Both the position numbers and the translations under genes were made by a program. A model generated the notes under the pieces. That model worked only from the letters and a program-made list of their open reading frames with translations. It was not told where the DNA came from and made no database searches. Below, piece after piece: positions 29,741-61,901 of a stretch of 64,000 bases of DNA (its first letter is position 1; each line of letters starts with the position of its first letter). Origin of the DNA: Macrostomum hystrix. Lineage: Eukaryota > Animalia > Platyhelminthes. The stretch is taken from the NCBI GenBank assembly GCA_950097015.1, contig CATNEN010000039.1, forward strand, positions 14,322,001 through 14,386,000. The letters run 5' to 3'.

Positions 29741-32700
29741 TCTAAATATACTAATTTTCACGTGTTGTTTGTCTGTGTGTGTGTCTGTGTGTGTGTGTGT
29801 GTGTCAGTTCGACATCTCCTCCTAGAATACTGGCAACTCAGCGTTGAAACTTATATGGGAAAATGGGAAATTTTCCGAGGAAGGCTATAGGCTATTTTAA
29901 TTCTGAAATTTAAAATTCTATGATCCTCAAAAAAGCAGAAAGGCTATTAAGTAGTATATAGTAGGCAAATGTCCTTCCCGCTGTGATGAAATTGGCCTCG
30001 GTTAAATGAGTTGCGTCAACATTTTGTGCCTATCTGTTTAGTGTATTTTCTCTCCAGTGGAGGGTTGGCAGTCGGTTTGAAAAAAAATGGGGCGGAGAGG
30101 TGGCCGTACGCACATTCTAACTGCCTCTGTGTATTGGCGGAGAGAGGGTGCCGCGAGTTATTTCTATTGAGGGGTCTGATTTGTTCAATATTGAAGTGCG
30201 TACAATGGGCAGGGCAGAGTTGGCTGGGTTAAAATAAAATATTTTAATTTGCGGGCCTCTCAGTGTAGGCGGAGAAGAATGTACTTACTAAAAAAACTGG
30301 CTGCACTTTGCGCTAAAGGCAATGAAATTTCAACTGTGAATTGTGCTTTTGCTCTTATCATTTGAAAAGAACTGAGTCGATTTGAGATCAGGCGATCGGA
30401 GCCGCGATGGGAGATGAGGCGATGGGAGATCAGGCAATGGGAGATCAGGCGATGGGAGATTAGGCGATGGGAGATCAGGCGATTGGAGATGAGGCGATGG
30501 GAGATCAGCCGATGGGAGATCAGCCGATGGGAGATTAGGCGATGGGAGATCAGGCAATGGGAGATGAGGCGATGGGAGATTAGGCGATGGGAGATGAGGC
30601 GATGGGAGATGAGGCGATGGGAGATTAGGCGATGGGAGATGAGGCGATGGGAGATCAGGCAATGGGAGATCAGGCGATGGGAGATGAGGCGATGGGAAAT
30701 CAGGCGATGGCGATGGGAGATGTGGCGATGGGAGATGAGGCGATGGGAGATCAGGCGATGGGAGATCAGGCGATGGGAGATGAGGCGATGGGAGATGAGG
30801 CGATGGGAGATGAGGCGATGGGATATCAGGCAATGGGAGATCAGGCGATGGGAGTTGAGGCGATGGGAGATCAGGCGATGGGAGATTAGGCGATGGGAGA
30901 TTAGGCGATGGGAGATGAGGCGATGGGAGATGAGGCGATGGGAGATGTGGCGATGGGAGATCAGGCGATAGGAGATCAGGCGATGGGAGATGAGGCGATT
31001 TGAGATGAGACGGTGGGAGATCAGGCGGGGGAAGATCAGGCGATTGGAGTTAAGGCGATGGGAGATGGGGCGATGGGAGATGAGGCGATGGGAGATTAGG
31101 CGATGGGAGATTAGGCGATGGGAGATGAGGCGATGGGAGATGAGGCGATGGGAGACGAGGCGATGGGAGATGAGGCGATGGGAAATCAGGCGATGGCGAT
31201 GGGAGATCAGGCGGGGGAAGATCAGGCGATAGGAGATCAGGCGATGGGAGATGTGGCGACGGGAGATGAGGTGATGGGTGATCAGGTGAAGGGAGATGAG
31301 GCGATGGGAGATGAGGCGATGGGAGATGAGGCAATAGGAGATGAGGCGATGGGAGATCAGGCGATAGGAGATGAGGCGATGGGAGATCAGGCGATGGGAG
31401 ATGTGGCGACGGGAGATGAGGCAATGGGAGATTAGGCGATGGGAGATCAGGCAATGGGAGATCTGGCGATGGGAGATCAGGCGATAGGAGATGAGGCGAT
31501 GGGAGATGAGGCGATGGGAGATGAGGCGATGGGAGATGAGACGGTGGGAGATCAGGCGGGGGAAGATCAGGCGATTGGAGATCAGGCGATGGGAGTTCTC
31601 TCCCCTCAACCTCCTCCGGAGGAGGAGTTTAGCTCGTAAATATACTAATTTTCACGTGTTGTTTGTCTGTCTGTGTGTGTGTGTGTGTGTCAGTTCGACA
31701 TCTCCTCCTAGAATACTGGCAACTCAGCGTTGAAACTTATATGGGAAAATGGGAAATTTTCCGAGGAAGGCTATAGGCTATTTTAATTCTGAAATTTCAA
31801 ATTCTATGATCCTCAAAAAAGCAGAAAGGCTATTAAGTAGTATATAGTAGGCAAATGTCCTTCCCGCTGTGATGAAATTGGCCTCGGTTAAATGAGTTGC
31901 GTCAACATTTTGTGCCTATCTGTTTAGTGTATTTTCTCTCCAGTGGAGGGTTGGCAGTCGGTTTGAAAATGGGGCGGAGAGTTGGCCGTACGCACATTCT
32001 AACTGTCCCTGTGTATTGGCGGAGAGAGGGTGCCGCGAGTTATTTCTATTGAGGGGTCTGATTTGTTCAATATTGAAGTGCGTACAATGGGCAGGGCAGA
32101 GTTGGCTGGGTTAAAATAAAATATTTTAATTTGCGGGCCTCTCAGTGTAGGCGGAGAAGAATGTACTTACTAAAAAAACTGGCTGCACTTTGCGCTAAAG
32201 GCAATGAAATTTCAACTGTGAATTGTGCTTTTGCTCTTATCATTTGAAAAGAACTGAGTCGATTTGAGATCAGGCGATCGGAGCCGCGATGGGAGATGAG
32301 GCGATGGGAGATCAGGCAATGGGAGATCAGGCGATGGGAGATTAGGCGATGGGAGATCAGGCGATTGGAGATGAGGCGATGGGAGATCAGCCGATGGGAG
32401 ATCAGCCGATGGGAGATTAGGCGATGGGAGATCAGGCAATGGGAGATGAGGCGATGGGAGATTAGGCGATGGGAGATGAGGCGATGGGAGATGAGGCGAT
32501 GGGAGATTAGGCGATGGGAGATGAGGCGATGGGAGATCAGGCAATGGGAGATCAGGCGATGGGAGATGAGGCGATGGGAAATCAGGCGATGGCGATGGGA
32601 GATGTGGCGATGGGAGATGAGGCGATGGGAGATCAGGCGATGGGAGATCAGGCGATGGGAGATGAGGCGATGGGAGATGAGGCGATGGGAGATGAGGCGA

Positions 32701-35700
32701 TGGGATATCAGGCGATGGGAGATTAGGCGATGGGAGATTAGGCGATGGGAGATGAGGCGATGGGAGATGAGGCGATGGGAGATGTGGCGATGGGAGATCA
32801 GGCGATAGGAGATCAGGCGATGGGAGATGAGGCGATTTGAGATGAGACGGTGGGAGATCAGGCGGGGGAAGATCAGGCGATTGGAGTTAAGGCGATGGGA
32901 GATGGGGCGATGGGAGATGAGGCGATGGGAGATTAGGCGATGGGAGATTAGGCGATGGGAGATGAGGCGATGGGAGATGAGGCGATGGGAGACGAGGCGA
33001 TGGGAGATGAGGCGATGGGAAATCAGGCGATGGCGATGGGAGATCAGGCGGGGGAAGATCAGGCGATAGGAGATCAGGCGATGGGAGATGTGGCGACGGG
33101 AGATGAGGTGATGGGTGATCAGGTGAAGGGAGATGAGGCGATGGGAGATGAGGCGATGGGAGATGAGGCAATAGGAGATGAGGCGATGGGAGATCAGGCG
33201 ATAGGAGATGAGGCGATGGGAGATCAGGCGATGGGAGATGTGGCGACGGGAGATGAGGCAATGGGAGATTAGGCGATGGGAGATCAGGCAATGGGAGATC
33301 TGGCGATGGGAGATCAGGCGATAGGAGATGAGGCGATGGGAGATGAGGCGATGGGAGATGAGGCGATGGGAGATGAGACGGTGGGAGATCAGGCGGGGGA
33401 AGATCAGGCGATTGGAGATCAGGCGATGGGAGTTCTCTCCCCTCAACCTCCTCCGGAGGAGGAGTTTAGCTCGTGTACTTACTAAACTGGCTGCCCTTTG
33501 CGCTAAAGGCAATGAAATTTCAACTGTGAATTATTATTTTGCTTTTTAACATTTGAAAAGAACTGAGGCGATTTGAGATCAGGCAATGGGAGATCAGGCA
33601 ATGGGAGATCAGGCGATGGGAGATCAGGCGATCGGAGATGAGGCGATGGGAGATCAGGCGACGGGAGATGAGCCGATGGGAGATCAGGCGATGGGAGATG
33701 AGGCGATGGGAGATCAGGCGATGGGAGATCAGGCGATGGGAGATGTGGCGACGGGAGATGAGGCAATGAGAAATGAGGCGATGGGAGATCAGGCGATAGG
33801 AGATGTGGCGACGGGAGATCAGGCGATGGGAGATCAGGCGATGGGAGATCAGGCGACGGGAGATGAGCCGATGGGAGATCAGGCGATGGGAGATCAGGCG
33901 ATGGGAGATCAGGCGATGGGAGATGAGCCGATGGGAGATCAGGCGATGGGAGATCAGGCGATGGGAGATCAGGCGATGGGAGATGAGGCGATGGGAGATG
34001 AGGCAATGAGAAATGAGGCGATGGGAGATGAGGCGATAGGAGATGTGGCGACGGGAGATGAGGCGATGGGAGATCAGGCGATGGGAGATGAGGCGATGGG
34101 AGATGAGGCGATGGGAGATGAGGCGATGGGAGATCAGGCGATAGGAGATGAGGCGATGGGAGATGAGACGATGGGAGATGATGCGATGGGAGATTAGGCG
34201 ATGGGAGATGAGGCGATGGGAGATGAGGCGATGGGAGATGAGGCGATGGGAGATTAGGCGATGGGAGATCAGGCGATAGGAGATGACGCGATGGGAGATC
34301 AGGCGATGGGAGATCAGGCGATGGGAGATCAGGCGATGGGAGATCAGGCGATGGGAGATCAGGCGATAGGAGATCAGGCGATGGGAGATCAGGCGATAGG
34401 AGATGACGCGATGGGAGATCAGGCGATGGGAGTTCTCTCCCCTCAACCTCCTCCGGAGGAGGAGTTTAGCTCGTCTAAATATACTAATTTTCACGTGTTG
34501 TTTGTCTGTGTGTGTGTGTGTCTGTCAGTTCGACATCTCCTCCTAGAATACTGGCAACTCAGCGTTGAAACTTATATGGGAAAATGGGAAATTTTCCGAG
34601 GAAGGCTATAGGCTATTTTAATTCTGAAATTTCAAATTCTATGATCCTCAAAAAAGCAGAAAGGCTATTAAGTAGTATATAGTAGGCAAATGTCCTTCCC
34701 GCTGTGATGAAATTGGCCTCGATTAAATGAGTTGCGTCAACATTTTGTGCCTATCTGTTTAGTGTATTTTCTCTCCAGTGGAGGGTTGGCAGTCGGTTTG
34801 AAAATGGGGCGGAGAGTTGGCCGTACGCACATTCTAACTGTCCCTGTGTATTGGCGGAGAGAGGGTGCCGCGAGTTATTTCTATTGAGGGGTCTGATTTG
34901 TTCAATATTGAAGTGCGTACAATGGGCAGGGCAGAGTTGGCTGGGTTAAAATTCAATTGATAAAATTTGCGGGCCTCTCAGTGTAGGCGGAGAAGAATGT
35001 ACTTACTAAAAAACTGGCTGCCCTTTGCGCTAAAGGCAATGAAATTTCAACTGTGAATTATTATTTTGCTTTTTAACATTTGAAAAGAACTGAGGCGATT
35101 TGAGATCAGGCAATGGGAGATCAGGCAATGGGAGATCAGGCGATGGGAGATCAGGCGATCGGAGATGAGGCGATGGGAGATCAGGCGATGGGAGATCAGG
35201 CGATGGGAGATCAGGCAACGGGAGATGAGCCGATGGGAGATCAGGCGATGGGAGATCAGGCGATGGGAGATCAGGCGATGGGAGATGAGGCGATGGGAGA
35301 TCAGGCGATGGGAGATCAGGCGATGGGAGATGTGGCGACGGGAGATGAGGCAATGAGAAATGAGGCGATGGGAGATCAGGCGATAGGAGATGTGGCGACG
35401 GGAGATGAGGCGATGGGAGATCAGGCGATGGGAGATGAGGCGATGGGAGATGAGGCGATGGGAGATGAGGCGATGGGAGATTAGGCGATGGGAGATCAGG
35501 CGATGGGAGATCAGGCGATAGGAGATGTGGCGACGGGAGATGAGGCGATGGGAGATCAGGCGATGGGAGATGAGGCGATGGGAGATGAGGCGATGGGAGA
35601 TGAGGCGATGGGAGATTAGGCGATGGGAGATTAGGCGATGGGAGATCAGGCAATGGGAGATCAGGCAATGGGAGATCAGGCGATGGGAGATCAGGCGATC

Positions 35701-38700
35701 GGAGATGAGGCGATGGGAGATCAGGCGATGGGAGATCAGGCGATGGGAGATCAGGCAACGGGAGATGAGCCGATGGGAGATCAGGCGATGGGAGATCAGG
35801 CGATGGGAGATCAGGCGATGGGAGATCAGGCGATGGGAGATCAGGCGATGGGAGATCAGGCGATGGGAGATGTGGCGACGGGAGATGAGGCAATGAGAAA
35901 TGAGGCGATGGGAGATCAGGCGATAGGAGATGTGGCGACGGGAGATGAGGCGATGGGAGATCAGGCGATGGGAGATGAGGCGATGGGAGATGAGGCGATG
36001 GGAGATTAGGCGATGGGAGATCAGGCGATAGGAGATGAGGCGATGGGAGATGAGACGATGGGAGATGATGCGATGGGAGATTAGGCGATGGGAGATCAGG
36101 CGATGGGAGATGAGGCGATGGGAGATCAGGCGATGGGAGATCAGGCGATGGGAGATGTGGCGACGGGAGATGAGGCAATGAGAAATGAGGCGATGGGAGA
36201 TCAGGCGATAGGAGATGTGGCGACGGGAGATGAGGCGATGGGAGATCAGGCGATGGGAGATGAGGCGATGGGAGATGAGGCGATGGGAGATTAGGCGATG
36301 GGAGATCAGGCGATAGGAGATGAGGCGATGGGAGATGAGACGATGGGAGATGATGCGATGGGAGATTAGGCGATGGGAGATGAGGTGATGGGTGATCAGG
36401 TGATGGGAGATGAGGCGATGGGAGATCAGGCGACGGGAGATGAGGCGATGGGAGATCAGGCAATGGGAGATCAGGCGATGGGAGATGAGGCGATGGGAGA
36501 TGAGGCGATGGGAGATGAGGCGATGGGAGATGAGGCGATGGGAGATGAGGCGATGGGAGATGAGGCGATGGGAGATGAGGCGATGGGAGATGAGGCGATG
36601 GGAGATGAGGCGATGGGAGATCAGGCGATGGGAGATCAGGCGATAGGAGATGACGCGATGGGAGATCAGGCGATGGGAGATCAGGCGATGGGAGATGAGG
36701 CGATGGGAGATCAGGCGATGGGAGGTCAGGCGATAGGAGATGTGGCGACGGGAGATGAGGCGATGGGAGATCAGGCGATGGGAGATGAGGCGATGGGAGA
36801 TGAGGCGATGGGAGATGAGGCGATGGGAGATTAGGCGATGGGAGATCAGGCGATAGGAGATGACGCGATGGGAGATCAGGCGATGGGAGATCAGGCGATA
36901 GGAGATCAGGCGATGGGAGATCAGGCGATAGGAGATGACGCGATGGGAGATCAGGCGATGGGAGTTCTCTCCCCTCAACCTCCTCCGGAGGAGGAGTTTA
37001 GCTCGTAAATATACTAATTTTCACGTGTTGTTTGTCTGTCTGTCTGTGTGTGTGTCTGTGTGTGTGTCAGTTCGACATCTCCTCCTAGAATACTGGCAAC
37101 TCAGCGTTGAAACTTATATGGGAAAATGGGAAATTTTCCGAGGAAGGCTATAGGCTATTTTAATTCTGAAATTTCAAATTCTATGATCCTCAAAAAAGCA
37201 GAAAGGCTATTAAGTAGTATATAGTAGGCAAATGTCCTTCCCGCTGTGATGAAATTGGCCTCGGTTAAATGAGTTGCGTCAACATTTTGTGCCTATCTGT
37301 TTAGTGTATTTTCTCTCCAGTGGAGGGTTGGCAGTCGGTTTGAAAATGGGGCGGAGAGGTGGCCGTACGCACATTCTAACTGTCACTGTGTATTGGCGGA
37401 GAGAGGGTGCCGCGATTTATTTCTATTGAGGGGTCTGATTTGTTCAATATTGAAGTGCGTACAATGGGCAGGGCAGAGTTGGCTGGGTTAAAATATAATT
37501 TTTTAATTTGCGGGCCTCTCAGTGTAGGCGGAGAAGAATGTACTTACTAAAAAAACTGGCTGCCCTTTGCGCTAAAGGCAATGAAATTTCAGCTGTGAAT
37601 TGTGCTTTTGCTCTTATCATTTGAAAAGAACCGAGTCGATTTGAGATCAGGCGATCGGAGCCGCGATGGGAGATGAGGCGATGGAATCCAGGCAATGGGA
37701 GATCAGGCGATGGGAGATTAGGCGATGGGAGATGAGGCGATGGGAGATTAGGCGATGGGAGATCAGGCGATTGGAGATGAGGCGATGGGAGATCAGCCGA
37801 TGGGAGATCAGCCGATGGGAGATTAGGCGATGGGAGATCAGGCAATGGGAGATGTGGCGACGGGAGATTAGGCGATGGGAGATCAGGCGATGGGAGATGA
37901 GGCGATGGGAAATCAGGCGATGGCGATGGGAGATGTGGCGATGGGAGATGAGGCGATGGGAGATGAGGCGATGGGAGACGAGGCGATGGGAGATAAGCCG
38001 ATGGGAGATTAGGCGATGGGAGATTAGGCGATGGGAGATTAGGCGATGGGAGATGAGGCGATGGGAGATTAGGCGATGGGAGATGAGGCGATGGGAGATG
38101 AGGCGATGGGAGATGAGGCGATGGGAGATGAGGCGATGGGAGATGAGGCGATGGGAGATGAGGCGATGGGAGATGAGGCGATGGGAGATGAGGGGATGGG
38201 AGATCAGGCGATGGGAGATGAGGCGATGGAAGATGAGGCGATGGAAGATGAGGCGATGGGAGATGAGGGGATGGGAGATGAGGCGATGGGAGATGAGGCG
38301 ATGGGAGATGAGGCGATGCGAGATGAGGGGATGGGAGATCAGGCGATGGGAGATAAGGCGATGGAAGATGAGGCGATGGGAGATGAGGGGATGGGAGATG
38401 AGGCGATGGGAGATGAGGCGATGGGAGATGAGGCAATGGGAGATGAGGCGATGGGAGATGAGGGGATGGGAGATGAGGCGATGGGAGATGAGGCGATGGG
38501 AGATGAGGCGATGGGAGATGAGGCAATGGGAGATGAGGCGATGGGAGATGAGGCGATGGGAGATCAGGCGACGGGAGATGAGGCGATGGGAGATCAGGCG
38601 ATGGGAGATGAGGCGAGGGGAGATCAGGCAATGGGAGATTAGGCGATGGGAGATGAGGGGATGGGTGATCAGGCGATGGGAGATGAGGCGATGGAAGATG

Positions 38701-39203
38701 AGGCGATGGGAGATGACGGGATGGGAGATGAGGCGATGGGAGATGAGGCGATGGGAGATGAGGCGATGGGAGATGAGGCAATGGGAGATGAGGCGATGGG
38801 AGATGAGGGGATGGGAGATCAGGCGATGGGAGATCAGGCGATGGGAGATCAGGCGATGGTAGATGAGGCGATGAAAGATGAGGCGATGGGAGATCAGGCG
38901 ACGGGAGATGAGGGGATGGGAGATCAGGCGATGGGAGATGTGGCGACGGGAGATGAGGTGATGGGTGATCAGGTGAAGGGAGATGAGGCGATGGGAGATA
39001 AGGCGATGGGAGATGAGGCGATGGGAGATGAGGCAATAGGAGATGAGGCGATGGGACATCAGACGATAGGAGATGATGCGATGGGAGATGAGGCGATGGG
39101 AGATGAGACGGTGGGAGATCAGGCGGGGGAAGATCAGGCGATTGGAGATCAGGCGATGGGAGTTCTCTCCCCTCAACCTCCTCCGGAGGAGGAGTTTAGC
39201 TCG
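29741..39203 (+). mobile_element. Head-to-tail array of five non-autonomous Helitron-like elements: 29741-31636, 31637-33473, 33474-34473 (5'-truncated), 34474-37005, 37006-39203
   Basis: 5' TCTAAATATACTAATT followed by a (TG/TCTG) microsatellite. Perfect 16-bp palindrome CCTCCTCCGGAGGAGG 11 nt before the 3' end CTCG, always followed by T. No TSD. Confidence 0.8.
30380..39162. repeat. 15-bp minisatellite (GGGAGAT[G/C/T]AGGCGAT)n inside each Helitron unit (blocks ~30380-31593, 32260-33431, 33565-34431, 35090-36963, 37640-39161)
   Basis: Read directly. It generates the RLISH, PHLPS, MGDEA and WEMRR pseudo-ORFs. Confidence 0.97.
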
Positions 39204-39534
39204 TTCTGACTAGATTTATCGATCGCTCTGTTTATTCTGCGGGCGAGTTTATTTAACTAGGGTTCCTGAGCCCGCTCGCGCTCCACTGTTCTTTTCGCGC
39301 TACCCTGCTCGTGAACCGACCTGTCTACCCCTCTCGTCCCGGCCACTGTTATTTGCACTAGTATTCGTCCTGTTAATTACTTCTCTACTAACATGTATTG
39401 CACCTATTGCATTGTTACCATTGAGCTCCTGCGCCTGACTAATTCATCCTGCTTGTCGTATGTCCCAGTGCGAATAAACGAAGATTAAGATAAAAGTGCT
39501 ACCGCTACACTGATTACGAGAACTCGAAACTACA
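39204..39534 (+). mobile_element. LTR-like repeat, 3' half
   Basis: Aligns with 49900-50270 (atcgatcgct, gcccgctcgcgc, gagctcct.cgcct, ataaaagtgctaccgctaca, terminal TACA). Confidence 0.75.
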
Positions 39535-40534
39535 ATTGGGATTGATTACGCCTGACTCTGTCTGCCAGTTATTTCGTCACACAATGCCAGTTTAATAACG
39601 TCACAACGGGATGGTTTGCGTAAAAAATCGTCGATTAGCTGTTGTGTCTGGCTTTGTGCATCTACTTTTGAATCTGTTAGTGTTAGAAATATTAGAGAGT
39701 AGCAAAAGCTGAAGAAGTCTATTAAGTTAAACATTAAATAAGCAGCGAGCTTTTTAAGACCTCATTAATTTTCTAGCGAGACAAGTGAAATAAGCTGACA
39801 GAAAAAACGGTAAGCGTAATAAGAGAGATTTTGCAGAGTAGTCGCAGAATCAGCTTAGAGACTCTATAGAGATTCTCTGAGAAGAGGAGTAGAGGAATAA
39901 TAAGGAAAAGTGGCGACAAAGGCCGAAATTGAACTCAGGACAGTTTCTGTCTGTTCTGTGTCATCTCTATAATATAGTTTTTGCGCAATAGTTTCTGTCC
40001 TGTTTATTAATTGTATTTGTATTGCCCCATTAAGAAGAATGCTTTGTCCTCGGTTTTTGTTTTTTAAAGTTCGTGACCATGCTTGAGTTTTATGCAATAC
40101 GTCGATTTCTAATCGGACATTACACTGCCGACTTGCAAAAGAAAATGCATTTTATGTTATAGTTTTCAGTTTCTGTTCTGCACTTTAGTCATATTCTGTT
40201 TTCACAAAAGCATGGCTGTAAGCATGGTTCTTCAGAACTTGGGGTCTGTGAATTACTTGAAGTACATTTCCGGTGAGTAAAATCTTTAAAGCTAATAATT
40301 AAAATGACTGAGTCTCTTGTAGTTTTCTACTTTTTGTCTCCAGTGTCTATCTTATTCTGGGTAAAAAAAATTGCCCTATTCTGTCTCTTAACTGCCTTTA
40401 AAATGCTTGCTACTTTACAGTCTTTTCATGACCTCACTGTTCATTTCGCAATTATGCCCACTTCCCTGCAGGAGGGCTGCTGGCAAATGACTTCATTTTG
40501 TGTCACTAGACCTGCAGCGAAGACTCCTGACAAC

Positions 40535-42742: not shown

Positions 42743-44990
42743 TCATCCTTGATAGCAGCTTGTCAGTCGTCGGCGACTGCTGATCACAATCGCGACGTCC
42801 AGGACGCAGAGACAGCCGAATCCAATAAATGTGGACAAGCCGAGGACGCAGAAGGACAGCTTGTAGGATCCCGTGACGTCACGAATGCTGCCAGCCAGCG
42901 GTGGTCCGATCGCTACGCCGACGCCACGGCAAAGGACAAGCAGGCCGATTCCTGTGCGGCAGTTCTCCCGTCCGATCAAATCGGCCAGGACGCAGTAGAG
43001 CTGGCTCATGAAGAGGCCCGAGGTCAGACCGAACGCAGCCGAGACAAACATGAACGGGACCAGGCTGCTAATAAGAGCAAAGGCGGCGATGCTTGACGCT
43101 GTGAGCAGTATGCCCATGCTCCAGAAGCGTCTGCGCTGCTGCACCAGGCACTGCATGTCGAACAGCAGACCGAAGCCAAACCGGGATATTGTATCGAAGG
43201 CACCTAGGTGATGCATTTGATACTTTAAAAATAAAGAAGCACTGTAACACATGAGCGTACCGCACCACTTACCCGAAATTGAGATCAGCAGCACGGAGGT
43301 GGTTTCCGTCAGTCCCATCTGCTCCGCGTAGTGCGGAACAATCACGGCGACTGGCTTAAAGCCAGCTGATATGAAAAAAGTGGCGACTGTGAACACGCTG
43401 AACTGCCAGTTTGAAAACAGATGCAGTTCAAAGCTCTCCAAAAACTGCGCGATGAACTCACTGGAGACGCTGCGACGCTTGCCTCCCGAGTCTGCACTTT
43501 TGGACAACAAGGAATGTTTCTCATCAGTTTCCCCATCAGAGTCATCATCAGCCTTCGAGTCCGTTGGGCCCTCGAGTGCAAAATTACTGTCTTGCTTGTC
43601 GGTAATCGGTGCACTCTTCTTGAGCGTCTCGCTTTTGAGTCCAGCCTTCTCAGATACGCCACCACAGCAGCCAGCTTCAGCTCGCTCGCTTCCATGAAGC
43701 GCTGACGACTCGTCCTGATGTTCGGGTAGTGGATACAGCAGCGCCCCACATACGAGTAGGTTGAGTGACAGTGCGCTCAGAATGAGCATGCATCCGCGAA
43801 ATGAGTACACCTGGATGAGAAAATGTGTGAGAAGAGGCAGCACGAAACTGCCGATTCCGGTACCAGCAGTCGCCAGGCCGAGAGCTATGGCCTTGCGCTT
43901 GCAGAAGTAGTCGTTTATTGCCAACAGACCCGCTGTGTAGGCCAGTCCATTGCCGACTCCCGTCATTAAGCCGAGGGTGAGGTAGATGAGCAGCAGACTG
44001 TGAGAAAAGGAGCTCAGCAACAGTCCCAGGAATGAAATTATTCCTCCGGCCATTGTGACGGAGCGAGAGCCGAAGTACTTGCACAGAACGCTAGTCATAG
44101 GACCTAGAAGAAAGTATATTTCGTCTAAGTTTTTTTACGGAATCTAATGCTTGAAGCTGTCAAGTGCAAACAAAGCTGCCGAGGTCCGTCTTTCAAGTAT
44201 AGGGCAGAGTTCATTTCAAATTTATTTTATAAGTTAACTTTTTTTCACTCTCTGAAATGTGGTTTTACTAAGTTTTCCACTTGAATTAAAATGCCTATGA
44301 TCAAAAGCGTATCTGTTTCTCCAGTATAGACTTGACTGCAGTTTGTTCTATAACTTTCAACCCCATTTCAACCTCTAGAGCTCGTATTGTTGCGTTCGAT
44401 TTAAGTCTTTTGAAGTCGTCTTGGGTATAGTGCTGATTAAAGTTTTTCCAGATGGCTGCTAATACGTATAAAAAGAGATACAAGCGTCCTCAACTGTTTA
44501 AAAATCCAGTCTCTGTTCCCCAGTGCAACATTCGCAACGCATTGCAAAAACTTGAATCAAGCGAGAGGGACATAAAACCCATAACCAAGGCCCTCACATG
44601 GACTGGCAACAGATTCTTCAGTAGGCCTATTCTTCATTGATTCTATCACCGATTCCTTTAAACTAGTAGCGACTTTTGGCTATTTGCAAGGCCAACATTC
44701 GAACCATTTCTTCTGCAACCACCCAGTAATTAGCGTCTCAGCATAGGCTTTCTCTGTAGCGAAGTGATTGATCCTGGGCAGTTGTACTTACCAACTAGAC
44801 ACTTCGAGGAGAACAACAGAGCAGCAAATCCAGCAGTTGAAGCCGACGAGAGCTGCATTTCCTCCAGAATTTCTCGATAGAAAACTCCGCTGGCCCGGTC
44901 GAGTCCGCCAGTCAGAAAGTGCATTAAGTGCGCGGACAAAGCCACCATCCAGCCCCAGTCACCATCGAGAGCTTTGCCTTGCGTCTTCAT
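42743..44990 (-). CDS. Monocarboxylate transporter (SLC16/MCT family), paralogue 3; exons 44990-44792, 44103-43273, 43203-42743 (~496 aa)
   Basis: DGDWGW, YFCKRK, FDTISR, GPPLAG. GT-AG introns at the conserved positions; 1491-nt frame. Confidence 0.92.
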
Positions 44991-45679: not shown

Positions 45680-47430
45680 TATTTACCTAATAAAAGATAG
45701 TCCTTGTCCTAGTCCTTAAATCGTTTCGCAGTCCTCGTTTTTAGGACTGAGAAATAATTTTAATTACTGCCATTCTGCCTTCTTTTTGACAATGCTCGTG
45801 TCCACTGGAATCAGCTAGGCGTCAGCTAGGCGACAGGAACGCTGCCAACGCACTTGGCATCACTCTACAAGAACACCGCTGTCACACAGCCTCACTGCGA
45901 AGCCTGGCATCGTGAGAGCCTTCGGTACATACCCGCTGCATTTCCATAGAAGAAATAGTTGATTAAATTCAAAAGGTTTGGGTTCTATTTTTGTTTGTGT
46001 TGTTTTTGTTTAAGCTTTCTTCTCACGGCTATAACAACTAAATAAAAATCACTTTGACATTATAAAAGTTACAAAAGACGGATTTAGAGGGAATCGATTT
46101 CATTTCTTAAATATAGTCTACGGTAAACCCCGAGTGCTGACTAAATCAAACTCACATTTCTAGGACTGAGCTGGCCAAAGACTAAATAAATTTCACTTAT
46201 GTCATAAAAACGTTAAAAGGTATACTTTCGGATTAAATGATGAGCTCATTAGGATGTCTTACGCATAAACTATTCTTAACAAGCGAAATCCATACCTATG
46301 GATTTTCATTCTGTTTCGAGCTGCTATTTACGGAGAGCATCAAAGCTAAATTTATTTTGCTGCTAAAAGCCACACAATATTCTCAATACGAAATTAAAAA
46401 CAAATTTAAATATTTGTTTCACAATTTCCACTTTCAAAGCTAGTAGCTGCAAGTTATCAAATGATGCGTACTATTTTACGACTCAACCATGCAGCTACGC
46501 AGTTTACACAGTAAAGAGCGTAAAGATCGTAAAGTAAAGTGCCAGTGTAATCTGACAGAGAGCAAGCCTGGCAAGCAGTACAGTATGCACATAATACCTT
46601 AGTGCGTCCAAAAAGTTCTTAGACAACCCTAATATCTCTGCATGTGTTCGACCGATTTTGATGAACAAAGACAAAATCATAAATTAATATGTAATGAATT
46701 CAGCGCTTAAGTTTTAACTTACTCGTAGTCTGGTGGACAGAAAAAAGCTATCAATCATTTACTAAATAACCAACGAAATTAGCAATACGATTTTTTAAGA
46801 GCATCGAATAGGGACGCCAAGTGGCATGTCGCATCTGGTCTTTGAAATGGATCAGCAAAATATCTGATGGTTAATCTTAAAGCTTTCGCCAGGTACTCGT
46901 ATTAATCATTAATTGCAAGCTGTGTGGGCTTAGTCATAGATTATAAAGAGCGAAAAATGAAAATGTAAAATGAAAAACACTCGCAGTTACCACAGAATTC
47001 ACAGTTATATTGTATTCTGTGATAGTTACCTTATTTCAAATATTTTTGTAGACTTGTAGCGGCAGAACAGATTGCAGAAGTGCAGCTAGCTAATTTCAAT
47101 AGAACATCGTCGAAACTTTTTCTCCACGAAATCAATCGCCTTGGCCGTAGAAATGTCTCTGATAGTTGAAAAATGCAGTTTTTATACCGGGAATCCAATC
47201 AACCAATCAAAACAGACTATATTGCAGTACATTCTCCCATTAGACATGCGCGCTCTGGCGCACAACAGTAGAGACAGTTGGGCATAATTACTGGGGCATT
47301 CAAAGTTCCCAAATCTTCTGTGTCGATTCTTTTTTCGTACTATGCATCAGTTAAAAACGAATGCACCGACCCAGGCCACCCTGGGGGATATATGGGACCA
47401 GCTACTGATTTCAGTCGATTTGGTTCGAAT

Positions 47431-48037
47431 CACTTTTGATTCCTGCCACTTTTGATTCCTGCCACTTTTGATTCCTGCCACTTTTGATTCGTGCCACTTT
47501 TGACTCGTGCCACTTTTGATTCGTGCCACTTTTGATTCGTGCCACTTTTGATTCGTGCCACTTTTGATTCCTGCCACTTTTGATTCGTGCCACTTTTGAT
47601 TCGTGCCACTTTTGATTCCTGCCACTTTTGATTCGTGCCACTTTTGATTCCTGCCACTTTTGATTCCTGCCACTTTTGATTCTTGCCACTTTTGATTCCT
47701 GCCACTTTTGATTCCTGCCACTTTTGATTCGTGCCACTTTTGATTCGTGCCACTTTTGATTCCTGCCACTTTTGATTCCTGCCACTTTTGATTCGTGCCA
47801 CTTTTGATTCGTGCCACTTTTGATTCCTGCCACTTTTGATTCCTGCCACTTTTGATTCCTGCCACTTTTGATTCCTGCCACTTTTGATTCCTGCCACTTT
47901 TGATTCGTGCCACTTTTGATTCGTGCCACTTTTGATTCCTGCCACTTTTGATTCATGCCACTTTTGATTCCTGCCACTTTTGATTCCTGCCACTTTTGAT
48001 TCCTGCCACTTTTGATTCCTGCCACTTTTGATTCCTG
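47431..48037. repeat. 16-bp minisatellite (GATTC[C/G]TGCCACTTTT)n, ~38 copies
   Basis: Read directly. Confidence 0.97.
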
Positions 48038-48487
48038 AGAAGTTGACAACTCCTTTATGATAAAGTTTTATTTCCTCACTATAATACTTGAAAATTATTA
48101 TACAAATTGCACCTGTACCGATTAGGCAAGATTGAGCACCCAACAGCACAGCCACAGCCACTGTACATATGAAGGCTGCGTACGGCTGTTCAGTCCATGT
48201 CTAGGGGGTGCTACACCCACCCTCAAATATCCCAATATCCCAGCTAATGCTGTTACTCAAAATTTAACAGCTGGATGAACTGAAGCAATGTGAGCTGTCT
48301 TTCCAGTGTATTGCTAAGAGACACGAATTGTTCTAGTGGAGTCGCGTATCAAAATCTACTTGTCAGCTGTGAAAATCTTTTGTGTCTATACCAGTTTATT
48401 TTTTGGAGAGAAAGTTTGCATTTTAGTTTGCTTTGGCGCGACTCACTCAAAAATGCGCAGTTTTTTCAGATTCAGCAGGAAATGTAT

Positions 48488-48828
48488 ACTTTTGATTCCT
48501 GCCACTTTTGAACCCTGCAGCTTTTGATTCATGCCACTTTTGAATCCTGCAGCTTTTGATTCCTGCCACTTTTGAACCCTGCAGCTTTTGATTCCTGCCA
48601 CTTTTAATTCCTGCAGCTTTTGATTCCTGCCACTTTTGATTCCTGCAGCTTTTGATTCTTGCCACTTTTGAACCCTGCAGCTTCTGAACCCTGCCACTTT
48701 TGAACCCTGCAGCTTCTGAACACTGCCACTTTTGAACTCTTCCACTTTGGAACCCTGCCACTTTTGAACCCTGCCACTTTTGAACTCTTCCACTTTTGAA
48801 CCCTGCCACTTTTGAACTCTGCCACTTT
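48488..48828. repeat. Related, more diverged 16-bp minisatellite (GA[TT/AC]CCTGC[CA/AG]CTTTT)n
   Basis: Read directly; same unit family as 47431-48037. Confidence 0.93.
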
Positions 48829-48859
48829 CTGCGTCGAAAAATCTAATCCACAACCAATT

Positions 48860-51555: not shown

Positions 51556-52261
51556 ATGACAGAAAAAAAAGATCGCAGAAGGCTGCGAGTGAACCGCAAT
51601 GGGGCGTCCCACAAGAAGGAGGGCGCAGCTCCTTCAGTACTGAAAGATGATAGATCTCCCGATATGGATATCAGTGGTCGAAACGCCATGCTTCGAGCTG
51701 TCGCTCGTGGTGACGTGGAAGACTTTGAAGGACATTTCAAGTCTTGTAACGGTAGTAGTACAGCTGTGAACTACAAAGACTACAGCCAGAGAACAGCGTT
51801 GATGCAAGCTTGTCTAGCAGGCTCCTTCGACAGTACTAGGGTCTCAATCAACAACCAGCTGGTGAAGCTTGACTACCAGGTAATATTTGATACATTTGAC
51901 AGCGAAATAATTTGCAATGCAATAGAATCTCCATCAACCATCAAATCTCTTTCAATTTGCGCAGGATATTTCCGGCTTCACAGCGCTGATGCATGCAGCT
52001 CAGAGAGGTCACCATTTAATAGTGGATCTGCTGCTCAAGAAAAAGGCGAACCACCAGTTGGTTGACTCTCGAGGCAACACTGCCATCATCCTCGCTGCCA
52101 GGCGCAACCATGTGGACTGCCTGAAGGCTTTTGCGAAGTACGTCAATGACCCTGCCGACTGGGTCGTAAAGGGAGAGTATGGACTCACAGCGGAGCAATG
52201 GGCTCAGACAAATCAACGCTTGGAAGCTTTGGCGCTCATAAGGAACACATTAGTGGGTTAG
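51556..52261 (+). CDS. Ankyrin-repeat protein A; exons 51556-51879, 51965-52261 (~206 aa)
   Basis: SGRNAMLRAV, RTALMQAC, GFTALMHAAQRGH, GNTAIILAA, GLTA. Phase-0 GT-AG intron. Confidence 0.85.
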
Positions 52262-57210: not shown

Positions 57211-57972
57211 GGCAATCTTTTACTTCCGTTCGTTAAATTATTTTTTCTTTTGAAAATAACAGCTGACGACAAATAAACGTGTTTAACGGTGTTTAACAGT
57301 AACAACAATTAACGGTAACACGGTAGGATTTTTGAAATGGTAGGAGTTCTGAAACAGAAGCTGAAACAATTCTGAAACCGTCAGGAGTCATCTCTCATGT
57401 TCTCATCTTATCTCAACATCTCGTGCTGTCATCTCGGACTCAAACTGGATAGTAGTGGCGGATCCAGTACAGGATGGCACCGAAGCTGTTGTGTGGATAC
57501 AGCCGGCGCCACAAAAACTCCTCGAGGTGGCTCTCAAACAGCGCCGCACTTGTGCCGTGCATTTGCCGCAGCTTGGCCTTCGCATGGGCCCACGTGCCCT
57601 CGATCGTGTTCGTGTGGACAGTAGGATCGGCTGGGTCGACAAAGTGGAGCCGGTGGTTGACATACGCGTGATTCTGCAGGCCGGCGTACGCCAGCCACCC
57701 GTCGGTCAGGATCCGGGTCCCAGGCAGAATGTGTTGCTGCAGGATGGGCATCAGGGTAGCCGCCGACCTATCAGCCACATCAGCCACGTCAGCACAAGTC
57801 TTTCAAACTCAGAGTATAATACAAATAAATCAAATTTAATTTAACCATTTCATAATTACTGACCACACTCCTGACCGTCTTTACCTTTAAACACCGTTAA
57901 ACACGTTTATTTGTCGTCAGCTGTTATTTTCAAAAGAAAAAATAATTTAACGAACGGAAGTAAAAGATTGCC
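57211..57972 (-). mobile_element. Merlin (IS1016/IS1595-like) DNA transposon deletion derivative; transposase C-terminus 57787-57440
   Basis: ~85-bp perfect TIRs starting GGCAATCTTTT, 8-bp TSD CACCTGCC (57203-57210, 57973-57980). Motifs DRSAATL, TDGWLAY, VNH, HTNTIEGTW, EFLWR. Confidence 0.95.
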
Positions 57973-58971: not shown

Positions 58972-61179
58972 ATGAATCTGAGAAAAACAGTCAGTTTCGA
59001 GAGGAAGACTGGTTCAAGCCATCCCGACTACGTTGACATCAGCGGTCGAAACCAACTAATTCGAGCTGTCGCCAGCGACGACGACGAGGAATTCGGAGTT
59101 CAATTGAAACTGTGCTGCAAAGTCAAGGAGAGTATCAACTACTCAGACTACAGCAAGAGAACGGCCCTAATTCATGGTAGCATTGTGGGAAACAACACTA
59201 TAGTCAATAGCTTGCTTGGAAATAGCCTAGTTGATATTGATATTCAGGTGAGTGAGCACAATCATTTTTCTTTTTGCCGTAACTTCACAGCCCCAAGGGG
59301 CCAAACGGGCCCTTTACTGCTTTTTAACGCAACTTTTTTCAAATTTAAGCAAAGCATCAAATTGTGAAGTGAAATAACAATGAGCTCAACCAAATCACAG
59401 ACAAGCCGTCTGTAATCTGAGATAGCTGCTAGCGAAGGGCAGTGCTGCCACCAGGTTAGTTTTCTCGACCAAGTGAAGAACACCTAGTAGAAATCGTAGA
59501 GCAGTCGAGTAAAGACTTTCGTCTTTAGGCTGCAGCAGTTGAACGGCATGACGCAGCTAGCTCTTAGATGGCCACTTCAACCTCGTCTTGTTCAACCTCG
59601 GAAGCAAAAATATCATTATTACTTTTAGCTTTAGCAAATTTACTTTATTAGAATTAGTTTGAGGCAATAAGATAAGACGCGTACACACGCTCAAGGAAGT
59701 TGAGGAGTTGGATGTACCATGACAATATAACGAAAAGGGGAAGAGAAAATGACTTGTGCAGCACGGGAGGTTGGGGTCCGGAGGTTGAGTGCCAAAAAAG
59801 GCGATGGGCCGAGTCAAATGCTACCTGCATTAATAAACAAGCATGCACGCGATGCTAGAGCCTCAAAAAAGAAAACGTCAGAAAGGTACATTTCTTACCA
59901 GAAATTGTGTAAAAGCCAGTCTGCCCAAACAGTAAACATTACAGTACAGTAAGCAGGGTGAACACGTCACTGCAGGGTGAAAGTGTGCACGAGCATATTT
60001 ATGCACACTGACAAAGAGCAGCGCGCGAGAGAAGGGAGGGGCCCGGAGTGTACAGCCTCTGGCGAGCTGCGCCTTCCGAGATGGTACGAGAACTGAACAA
60101 TGAACATACAGACAGAAAAGAAAGCAGGGAACAGCCCAAGTACGCAAACCTCACTAAAAAATAAACTTGCACGTGCAGGCAAGGGTGCAAACGGATGCCT
60201 AAGGGAAGTGACTAAAGCTAAAGTAGCGACTTAGCGACTCACTTCAATTGTACTCGTATATGAAAAACTAGCTGACGACGTGCTTTCATTTTATATTCCG
60301 ATTTATCGCAGGATATTTCCGGCTTCACAGCGCTGATGCACGCAGCTCAGAGAGGTCACCATTTAATAGTGGATCTGCTGCTCAAGAAAAAGGCAAACCA
60401 CCAGTTGGTTGACTCTCGCGGCAACACTGCCATCATCCTCGCTGCCAGGCGCAACCATGTGGACTGCCTGGAGGCTTTTGCGAAGTACGTCAATGATCCT
60501 GCCGACTGGGTCGTAAAGGGAGAGTATGGACTCACAGCGGAGGAGTGGGCTAATAAAAATGAACGCTCAGAAGCCGAGGAGTACATAAAGAACTTGTAAG
60601 CATTTATCAGGTGTTTGGAATATATTTTGCTCGCTTTAGCCACTGTTCAAAATTAATATTACGTTTTGTCTCGATACTAAGCCTCTGTTAATATCTTTGG
60701 CATGTGGGATCGATACTAAGGTTCTGTAGATTTCTTTGGAATCGGGCTTTAGTTCGATATACCTTGCTTGTATTCTTCTCGTTTCAATTTTAGAACGATC
60801 GACTTTAAAGCGAGGAAATCCAACAATCAAGGACCTCCCGATTGCAATGGTAATGGTGAAAAAGATGGAAGCAGTGGCTCTGGCTCATCAAGCGATGGTG
60901 GAAAAGACAATGAGGCTTCCAGAAGAAACGGCTGCTCCGGTTATTGTAGCGGCAGCTGCAGAAAACGATCACATGAGTCAGACGAGAGGGAGAGATCCTC
61001 AGGACGACGCAGTCCAAAAAAGCAATTTGCTTTCAATACTGCCCCTCGACGCGTAGGAAGCCAGCAAGTCAGCCTCGACCGAAGTGTCGGAGGAGGAGGT
61101 AGTGGAAGCGGAGGTCGAGGTCGCAACCCAGTAGGTAGCGGCGGCGGTGGCGGTGGCGGCGGCGGTGGCGGTGGCGGCA

Positions 61180-61223
<44 letters not shown>

Positions 61224-61901
61224 AGCGGTGGCGGTGGCGGTGGTCGTTTTGCAAGCGAAGGCGTGAGAAATTTCGTCACACCGGCAGACGTGGAAGACCA
61301 CTACGCAATCGGCGACAACCGGGAGGCGCATGTGGCTGTTATAAAACGTATACCGAGTAATACGCACAGAGGCATCGACTATAGTATGCAAGCTACTGAG
61401 TCTGTAAAACGGTACCTACTACATTTTTTGGAAATCCATGGCTTTAACATTACCATGCTTGAATTTGAAACTACTCGAGAGCTGAGCGATTTCATCGCTG
61501 AATTTCCGAATTTAGTACATATGCATGGCTGCAGCGCCTGGGCGTTAGGATTAGTTGACTTCGGCGTTCTGGAACTATCTCAAAAATTGATTCTGCTCGA
61601 GCAGGCCCAGGCTATTGATGGATTGCCGAAACTGCTTCTCAACCATAGCGAGGCTCCACCACTTAAACAATACAGAGAGTTTGACCATCACCAGCACACT
61701 CTGTTTGTTTACGGCGGCTGCGCTGCACCCGGCATCTGGGACGAGATGAGGAACCACTTCGACATTCCGCCACCGAGGCCTGAGTTCACGCTTCACCTGG
61801 GCGAGCTGCTTAGGCGCCACAGGCAGGCGTGCAGGCCTCAGGAGGAGTTCATCGTGTTCGATAATTTCCTGCAGATGAAGCTCGTGTTTTCTGGCAACTA
61901 A
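58972..61901 (+). CDS. Ankyrin-repeat protein B with Ser/Gly linker, poly-Gly and a C-terminal caspase-like domain; exons 58972-59247, 60312-60595, 60794-61901 (~555 aa; 5' end uncertain)
   Basis: Ankyrin motifs as in gene A. Donor GTGAG at 59248, acceptor at 60311. Donor GTAAG at 60596 and acceptor tttcaattttAG at 60793 are both phase 2, joining the 60768-61901 ORF in frame. Confidence 0.75.
61088..61243 (+). repeat. Gly-rich tract including a (GGC/GGT)n trinucleotide repeat (~61140-61243) encoding poly-Gly
   Basis: Read directly. Confidence 0.95.

Follow-up and report, generated by a model that had tools for sequence, protein, structure and literature searches.

An ankyrin, poly-glycine and putative pseudo-caspase gene in the flatworm Macrostomum hystrix

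Proposed structure and splicing of the gene at 58972-61901

We analysed a 64,000-nucleotide stretch of the Macrostomum hystrix genome (assembly GCA_950097015.1, contig CATNEN010000039.1, positions 14,322,001 to 14,386,000 of the forward strand; hereafter the window, whose own numbering is used for all positions given without a contig name). On the forward strand of the window, positions 58972-61901 likely constitute a single gene of three exons that encodes a 555-residue protein, in which ankyrin repeats are followed by a low-complexity and poly-glycine linker and then by a domain descended from caspases. This judgement covers the identity and the architecture of the gene and leaves its mechanism aside. 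Searches were run on its exons one by one.

Exon A (58972-59247, 92 codons) carries the start ATG and a degenerate ankyrin module, and ends at a phase 0 donor (CAG^GTGAGT, with ^ marking the exon boundary). Intron 1 (59248-60311) is a GT...AG intron of 1064 nt; its positional counterpart in a tandem paralogue at 51556-52261 is 85 nt long. Exon B (60312-60595), which follows an acceptor ending in TCGCAG, encodes two ankyrin repeats and a capping helix and ends in phase 2 at position 60595, where an in-frame TAA (60597-60599) overlaps the donor CTT^GTAAGC. The preliminary description of this locus had pointed to precisely this overlap of the TTGTAA stop of the second ankyrin exon with a GTAAG donor, and it is present in the sequence as stated. 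Intron 2 (60596-60793, 198 nt) begins with GTAAGC over the apparent stop and closes with the acceptor TTTCAATTTTAG, after which exon C (60794-61898) starts in the matching phase (TTTCAATTTTAG^A) and stays open for 368 codons up to the TAA stop codon at 61899-61901. Together, the 276, 284 and 1105 nt of the three exons amount to 555 codons, in agreement with the earlier proposal of a phase-matched acceptor at 60793 and a product of ~555 aa.

The ankyrin nature of exon B is clear from Pfam (Ank, E value 1.6e-12; Ank_2, E value 5.1e-12). Exon A matches Ank_2 weakly (E value 0.018) and returned no matches when used as a search query; for the tandem paralogue and the paralogue L016 (see below), the homologous exon exceeds the Pfam thresholds for Ank_4/Ank_2. 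The first part of exon C (60794-61139) encodes a linker of low complexity, rich in Ser, Gly and Arg, which contains no in-frame ATG and belongs to no Pfam family. It leads into a poly-glycine tract (61140-61244; 13 G, S, 14 G, S, 6 G, then R-F), and the remainder of the exon includes the putative pseudo-caspase domain (61302-61898, ~199 residues), which is colinear with caspase p20 and p10 according to hhalign, its homology to L016 and AlphaFold2 (AF2).

Paralogues in the same genome were located by two separate searches, one with exon B and one with the caspase family PF00656. The closest full, non-tandem paralogue is L016/L040 (G000:C39:10556797-10562000; L016 at C39:10558297), which lies on the same contig at a distance of 3.8 Mb and was detected solely via the ankyrin exon search, not via its C-terminal domain. 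L016 has an unbroken open reading frame (ORF) of 507 codons, in which the ankyrin part gives way to a short acidic/Gly stretch, then to (GGGAG)n over ~130 residues and lastly to a C-terminal domain of 224 residues. Exon B shares 47 % identity with the L016 ankyrin part, compared with 32-40 % with the ankyrin exons of true ankyrin (ANK)-caspase genes, and a run resembling the 60794-61139 linker (C.D.NG.G.KD) follows the L016 ankyrin part in one continuous frame. As L016 has the same reading without the intron, it supports the splice-made reading of the 58972-61901 gene. We also observed that the first ankyrin exon of L016 has an acceptor and no in-frame ATG, which makes a further 5′ exon or trans-splicing likely at that locus.

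The position of intron 2 recurs among the caspase genes of this genome. A phase-2 donor that overlaps a stop after the ankyrin exon is also found in L017, L018, L020/L021 and L022, in each case just upstream of a PF00656 exon (69-108 bits). The donor falls on the homologous codon, 17 residues past the W/C-A of the last repeat, in the 58972-61901 gene (CTT^GTAAGC), L018 (GCT^GTAAGC), L020/L021 (TTG^GTGAGT) and L022 (GTG^GTAGGT), and five residues earlier in L017 (TTC^GTAAGT). Phase-matched acceptors were identified for the 58972-61901 gene, L017, L018 and L020, while a simple acceptor scan gave no resolved site for L022 and L025. For intron 2 itself, filtering on phase, donor type and pyrimidine tract left a single donor/acceptor pair. 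Conservation of the intron in paralogues and the intron-less paralogue L016 both support the hidden phase-2 splice, and we strongly infer that the 60595^60794 junction is used in this gene.

If it were not used, the gene would end at the TAA at 60597 and encode an ankyrin-only protein of ~187 residues, and the downstream frame would be what remains of a caspase exon, either untranslated or put to separate use. The TAA is indeed in frame, and the tandem paralogue at 51556-52261 is ankyrin-only with a stop at nearly the same place. However, the downstream frame is open over all 368 codons, and the chance of the 329 codons outside poly-Gly staying open is P ~7e-8; the first in-frame ATG of exon C is codon 198 (nt 61386), with none in the first 197 codons, and neither AATAAA nor ATTAAA occurs as a polyadenylation signal in the 198-nt interval. 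Moreover, true ANK-caspase paralogues normally end this exon with a stop that overlaps a donor, and L016 reads through the equivalent position. Termination at this TAA as the sole fate of the gene is therefore quite improbable, although an ankyrin-only product ending there may exist alongside the spliced form, a point that counts against an exclusive fusion product.

Probable caspase descent and active site of the C-terminal domain

Three lines of evidence connect the 61302-61898 domain with caspases. First, a comparison with an alignment of 24 caspases from the same genome gave an hhalign score of 30.5, against 14.1 +/- 2.3 for 150 shuffles (maximum 20.2) and 18.5 for the reversed sequence, with the match spanning domain residues 48-131 in a register that runs from helix 1 through strand 4. 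Second, a chain of homology passes through L016. The two domains match each other (BLASTP: E value 6e-5 over 87 residues; Smith-Waterman score 65, shuffles 30.8 +/- 4.8, z 7.1, 0/1000 as high), and the L016 domain in turn finds PF00656 as its best Pfam family (14.6 bits, E value 0.027, profile positions 120-233, under the cut-off), scores 11.8 bits against a hidden Markov model (HMM) of 16 same-genome caspases (1000 shuffles, all <= 4.7) and has 30 named language-model neighbours, of which 28 are Peptidase_C14, at 0.91. Third, a MAFFT alignment (A2) places the 61302-61898 domain colinear with the caspase family over its full length, and AF2 supplied with this family alignment returned a model (predicted local distance difference test score, pLDDT, 71.5; predicted template modelling score, pTM, 0.69) whose top Foldseek matches in the PDB are all caspases (E value 3e-8, template modelling score 0.62-0.65). 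Taken together, the profile comparison, the homology chain via L016 and the fold prediction strongly support descent of the domain from a caspase (peptidase C14A), bearing out the origin proposed earlier for the last ~200 aa.

Several results weigh against this assignment. Neither the domain alone nor the whole ORF returned a Pfam match at E <= 10, and the gathering score of PF00656 (21.4 bits) was not reached by the domain. No sequence match was found in the PDB, and no relative of the domain was found in an index of 5.8 billion proteins (searched for proteins of 207-660 residues) or, using HMMER, among 1.84 billion representative proteins. Against the own-genome caspase HMM, the domain scored -0.9 bits (rank 113 of 1002, not significant), and the C-terminal halves of this domain and that of L016 are not significantly similar when compared alone (z 0.4), although they nonetheless align colinearly (E-F-T ... 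N-F-L ... K-L). The AF2/Foldseek result is partly circular since the A2 alignment consists of caspases, and AF2 without an alignment gave an unusable model (pLDDT 34). In addition, a search of the genome with the domain returned only the self-match, to which a two-sequence profile added nothing, and its language-model neighbours all scored <0.9 and provided no usable lead (a CHAT-like cluster reached 0.86). The caspase fold anticipated in the preliminary description thus stands in part: Pfam PF00656 gives no match, hhalign against the own-genome caspases is positive, and AF2/Foldseek is positive only when a caspase alignment is supplied.

The missing Pfam and PDB sequence matches and the insignificant HMM score would also suit an unrelated alpha/beta domain whose caspase likeness is motif pareidolia, particularly as an alternating strand/helix pattern is common among Rossmann-like folds. 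We regard such a coincidence as highly improbable, given an hhalign score ~7 standard deviations above the shuffles in the expected register, an L016 domain that ties 61302-61898 to PF00656 by three methods, and an ankyrin exon, intron position, poly-Gly tract and following R-F that are all common to true caspase genes. Caspase descent therefore remains our reading of a domain that seemed an orphan of 200 residues, unmatched in every database search, and that was traced to caspases by same-genome paralogues alone.

Within the caspase-like framework, the active site appears to be degenerate. In alignment A2, the segment L-P-K-L-L-L-N-H-S-E-A (61623-61655) lies opposite K-P-K-x-F-x-x-Q-A-C-R, so that N-H-S-E (61641-61652) faces x-Q-A-C and the catalytic Cys position is occupied by Glu or a gap, in agreement with the Glu first read there. 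No Cys is present within 20 residues on either side of the aligned position. Loss of the catalytic Cys from the predicted protein is thus confirmed at the level of the sequence.

The catalytic His is probably retained as M-H-G (61521-61529), which both MAFFT A2 and hhalign place opposite the catalytic S-H-G. From the glycine of M-H-G to L-P-K there are 32 residues, compared with 31-32 in the paralogues, and under this register the Asp of V-D-F-G, common to the 58972-61901 gene and L016, meets the conserved D-G of the family. The placement requires a deletion of ~13 residues before the strand; as the AF2 model is poorly defined around M-H-G (pLDDT <50 for residues 88-108), we leave the assignment at probable. 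An alternative candidate for this position, the Phe of D-F-G put forward in the preliminary description, was dropped in favour of M-H-G on grounds of spacing and the two aligners, and was probably a register error. In L016, both catalytic residues are lost, R-R-G standing at the position of the His and L-Q-G-Y at that of the Cys.

A QACRP string occurs in the region of the last helix (61824-61838), near the C-terminus and away from the catalytic position, where it had been reported before. From the composition of the domain, ~5e-4 occurrences of QACR would be expected. It was considered as a displaced active site and rejected, as no hydrophobic strand precedes it, only 25 residues separate it from the C-terminus and L016 shows nothing similar there.

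The ankyrin-caspase family, its divergence and the surrounding window

More distant matches to exon B were found at seven loci (C38:8773345-, C38:8782313+, C1:3120969-, C1:3106996-, C38:9302663-, C1:9221593+ and C38:8739462-), each of which has a bona fide caspase exon on the same strand ~400-850 nt downstream (PF00656, 69-124 bits). The order of open frames at these loci is ankyrin exons, a Gly-rich or poly-Gly linker and a caspase domain. Exon B matches the ankyrin exons of L011/L023, L020/L021, L022 and L025 with E values of 1e-8 to 4e-6, and all of these keep S-H-G and QACR, identifying them as catalytically intact paralogues. The residue following QACR varies by locus (L011/L023, QACRG; L025, QACRD; L022, QACRE; L020/L021, QACRH; L029, QACRV). 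Ankyrin ORFs are also situated just upstream of the caspases L002, L004, L005, L007/L039, L009, L030 and L031, and overall a caspase exon directly preceded by ankyrin ORFs occurs at no fewer than 16 loci in this genome. Both ANK plus C14 architectures and catalytically intact relatives, which the preliminary description had suggested looking for, are therefore present among the same-genome paralogues. Its characterisation of the architecture as unusual holds for animals generally, among which it is rare, but neither for this genome, with its at least 16 loci, nor for flatworms, from which ANK caspases have been published.

Two members with long glycine tracts have altered the Cys motif of an otherwise recognisable caspase. 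L017 has 32 G and R-F followed by a caspase with S-H-G but QADRG, and L018 has 29 G followed by a caspase with S-H-G and EAGRD. Their tracts of 29-32 G occupy the same place as the poly-Gly of the 58972-61901 gene, preceding a true caspase domain, and R-F directly after poly-Gly is common to the 58972-61901 gene and L017. Among database proteins, the L017 caspase domain is closest to a caspase fragment of Macrostomum lignano (50 % identity), which is the sole outside match. Both loci lie in G000:C38:8736000-8786000, where at least six caspase loci are clustered (including L017, L018, L025, L027 and L028), and where ANK-polyGly-caspases carry QADRG or EAGRD in place of QACRG and some copies are without S-H-G. 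The cluster stands out within the ankyrin-caspase family as a hotspot for the decay of active sites.

In a maximum-likelihood tree of caspase domains, the 58972-61901 gene pairs with L016 with weak support, and the two adjoin the Gly-linker subfamily in a part of the tree that is unresolved. Its terminal branch measures 6.3 substitutions per site and that of L016 5.0, against a family median of 1.5. The gene is a very fast-evolving member of the Gly-linker subfamily within a large ankyrin-caspase expansion. Judged by the motifs at the Cys position, the subfamily presents a series of decay, from QACRG through QACRD/E/H/V, QADRG and EAGRD to LQGY (L016) and NHSE (58972-61901 gene), with the present gene as its clear pseudo-enzyme end-member among flatworm ankyrin-caspases.

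Such a branch, ~4x the family median, fits functionless drift too, and to that extent counts against a maintained function. The gene could be a real fusion gene and yet a dying copy, drifting since the loss of catalysis and not having acquired a stop so far; the lost Cys, the weak match of exon A to ankyrin profiles and the lack of any relative in the protein databases searched are in keeping with this. We nevertheless consider a dying copy fairly unlikely. At a domain identity of only ~25 %, long open frames, a common architecture and the hydrophobic core pattern of the fold persist in both the 58972-61901 gene and L016, where free drift to that level would be expected to bring stops or frameshifts; the splice signals are also intact. 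Retention of open frames and architecture at ~25 % identity thus argues against simple decay of what would be a maintained pseudo-enzyme, and relaxed constraint may apply.

The tandem paralogue is a two-exon, ankyrin-only gene on the forward strand (51556-51879 and 51965-52261). Its exon 2 shares a 268-nt tract of 95 % DNA identity with 60307-60574, and the first 77 codons of this tract contain one non-synonymous and four synonymous changes. Exon 1, the intron and the flanks have diverged from those of the 58972-61901 gene, and no poly-Gly or caspase exon is found downstream. As the exon 2 tract is 95 % identical and its surroundings are diverged, gene conversion or a recent partial duplication is the probable origin. 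Between the two ankyrin genes lies a transposase fragment on the reverse strand (57443-57787), a 115-residue ORF with an ISXO2-like transposase domain (PF12762, E value 1.2e-14, C-terminal two thirds only).

Elsewhere in the window, a single-exon ORF of 451 residues on the reverse strand (42746-44098) belongs to the major facilitator superfamily (PF07690, E value 1.7e-33). Long open frames of ~16-residue tandem repeats (GIKSGRNQKWQESKVA-like) occupy 47347-48853, also on the reverse strand; they are probably a satellite or mobile-element repeat, and a similar repeat adjoins the caspase locus L005. Finally, ~10 kb at 30000-40000 show a very strong GC skew (+0.5).

Possible role and comparison with known systems

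The predicted protein combines the recruitment-type module of active relatives and a long flexible linker with a domain that, on the motifs present, should be incapable of cysteine-protease action, a composition that is shown or strongly supported for each part. Because such a protein cannot cut substrates, we tentatively suggest, as its most likely function, that it serves active ankyrin-caspases as a partner or decoy with no catalysis of its own. It might pair with active ankyrin-caspases via its caspase-like domain, as cFLIP does with caspase-8; alternatively, its ankyrin module might compete for whatever recruits them. Some other non-catalytic role would take the probability that is left once the partner or decoy and the functionless copy have been given theirs. 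RNA interference is available in Macrostomum, which makes the proposed regulation directly testable.

A wider scheme may be sketched, which we think unlikely as a whole. In a free-living flatworm, a caspase-control module independent of DED/CARD could comprise a dead ANK-polyGly-caspase, a neighbouring ankyrin-only decoy whose similarity is maintained by gene conversion and further copies with graded losses, which together would tune a large family of ankyrin-recruited caspases; fast divergence would then reflect a conflict, such as one with pathogens acting on this pathway.

cFLIP and other pseudo-caspases are caspase-like domains without the catalytic cysteine, and cFLIP pairs with caspase-8. 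The 58972-61901 protein resembles cFLIP in having a caspase-derived fold, no nucleophile and the recruitment module of its active relatives, and in having been duplicated from active enzymes. The two differ in the prodomain, which is a tandem DED in cFLIP and ankyrin here, and the origin of the 58972-61901 protein is independent and lineage-specific, with a regulatory function that is hypothetical. Should it regulate active ankyrin-caspases, evolution would have produced a counterpart of cFLIP independently.

A further parallel may be drawn with COP/ICEBERG/INCA, the CARD-only decoy genes next to caspase-1. In both cases, a truncated, tandem, prodomain-only copy adjoins a full-length gene, the copy in question here being the ankyrin-only gene at 51556-52261. 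The module is CARD there and ankyrin here, and the full-length neighbour is itself catalytically dead in the present case, so the parallel would be one of analogy only.

Within the genome, the nearest comparison is with L017 (QADRG) and L018 (EAGRD), on C38 near 8.77-8.78 Mb, which share with the 58972-61901 gene the exon plan, the phase-2 intron, poly-Gly and loss of the Cys. Both are still recognised by PF00656 (69-83 bits) and retain S-H-G, whereas the 58972-61901 gene and L016 are beyond Pfam recognition.

Lastly, ANK caspases were first seen in Schistosoma and have been described as restricted to parasitic platyhelminths and one annelid, with none reported from Macrostomum lignano (PMC11463336). 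The 58972-61901 protein agrees with these flatworm ANK caspases in that ankyrin lies N-terminal to the caspase-like domain in one polypeptide, in a platyhelminth, without CARD or DED; it differs in lacking the catalytic Cys, in falling under every caspase profile threshold and in having a 35-residue poly-Gly linker (PMC11463336). Its host appears to be a free-living macrostomid, in which the ankyrin-caspase family is large, in contrast to the published view of ANK caspases as parasite-specific (PMC11463336). The ankyrin-caspase design is thus already known, and the 58972-61901 copy is a dead outlier of it; what is new is the extreme divergence of a domain that no public profile recognises, a poly-Gly subfamily with graded active-site loss and an ankyrin-only neighbour.

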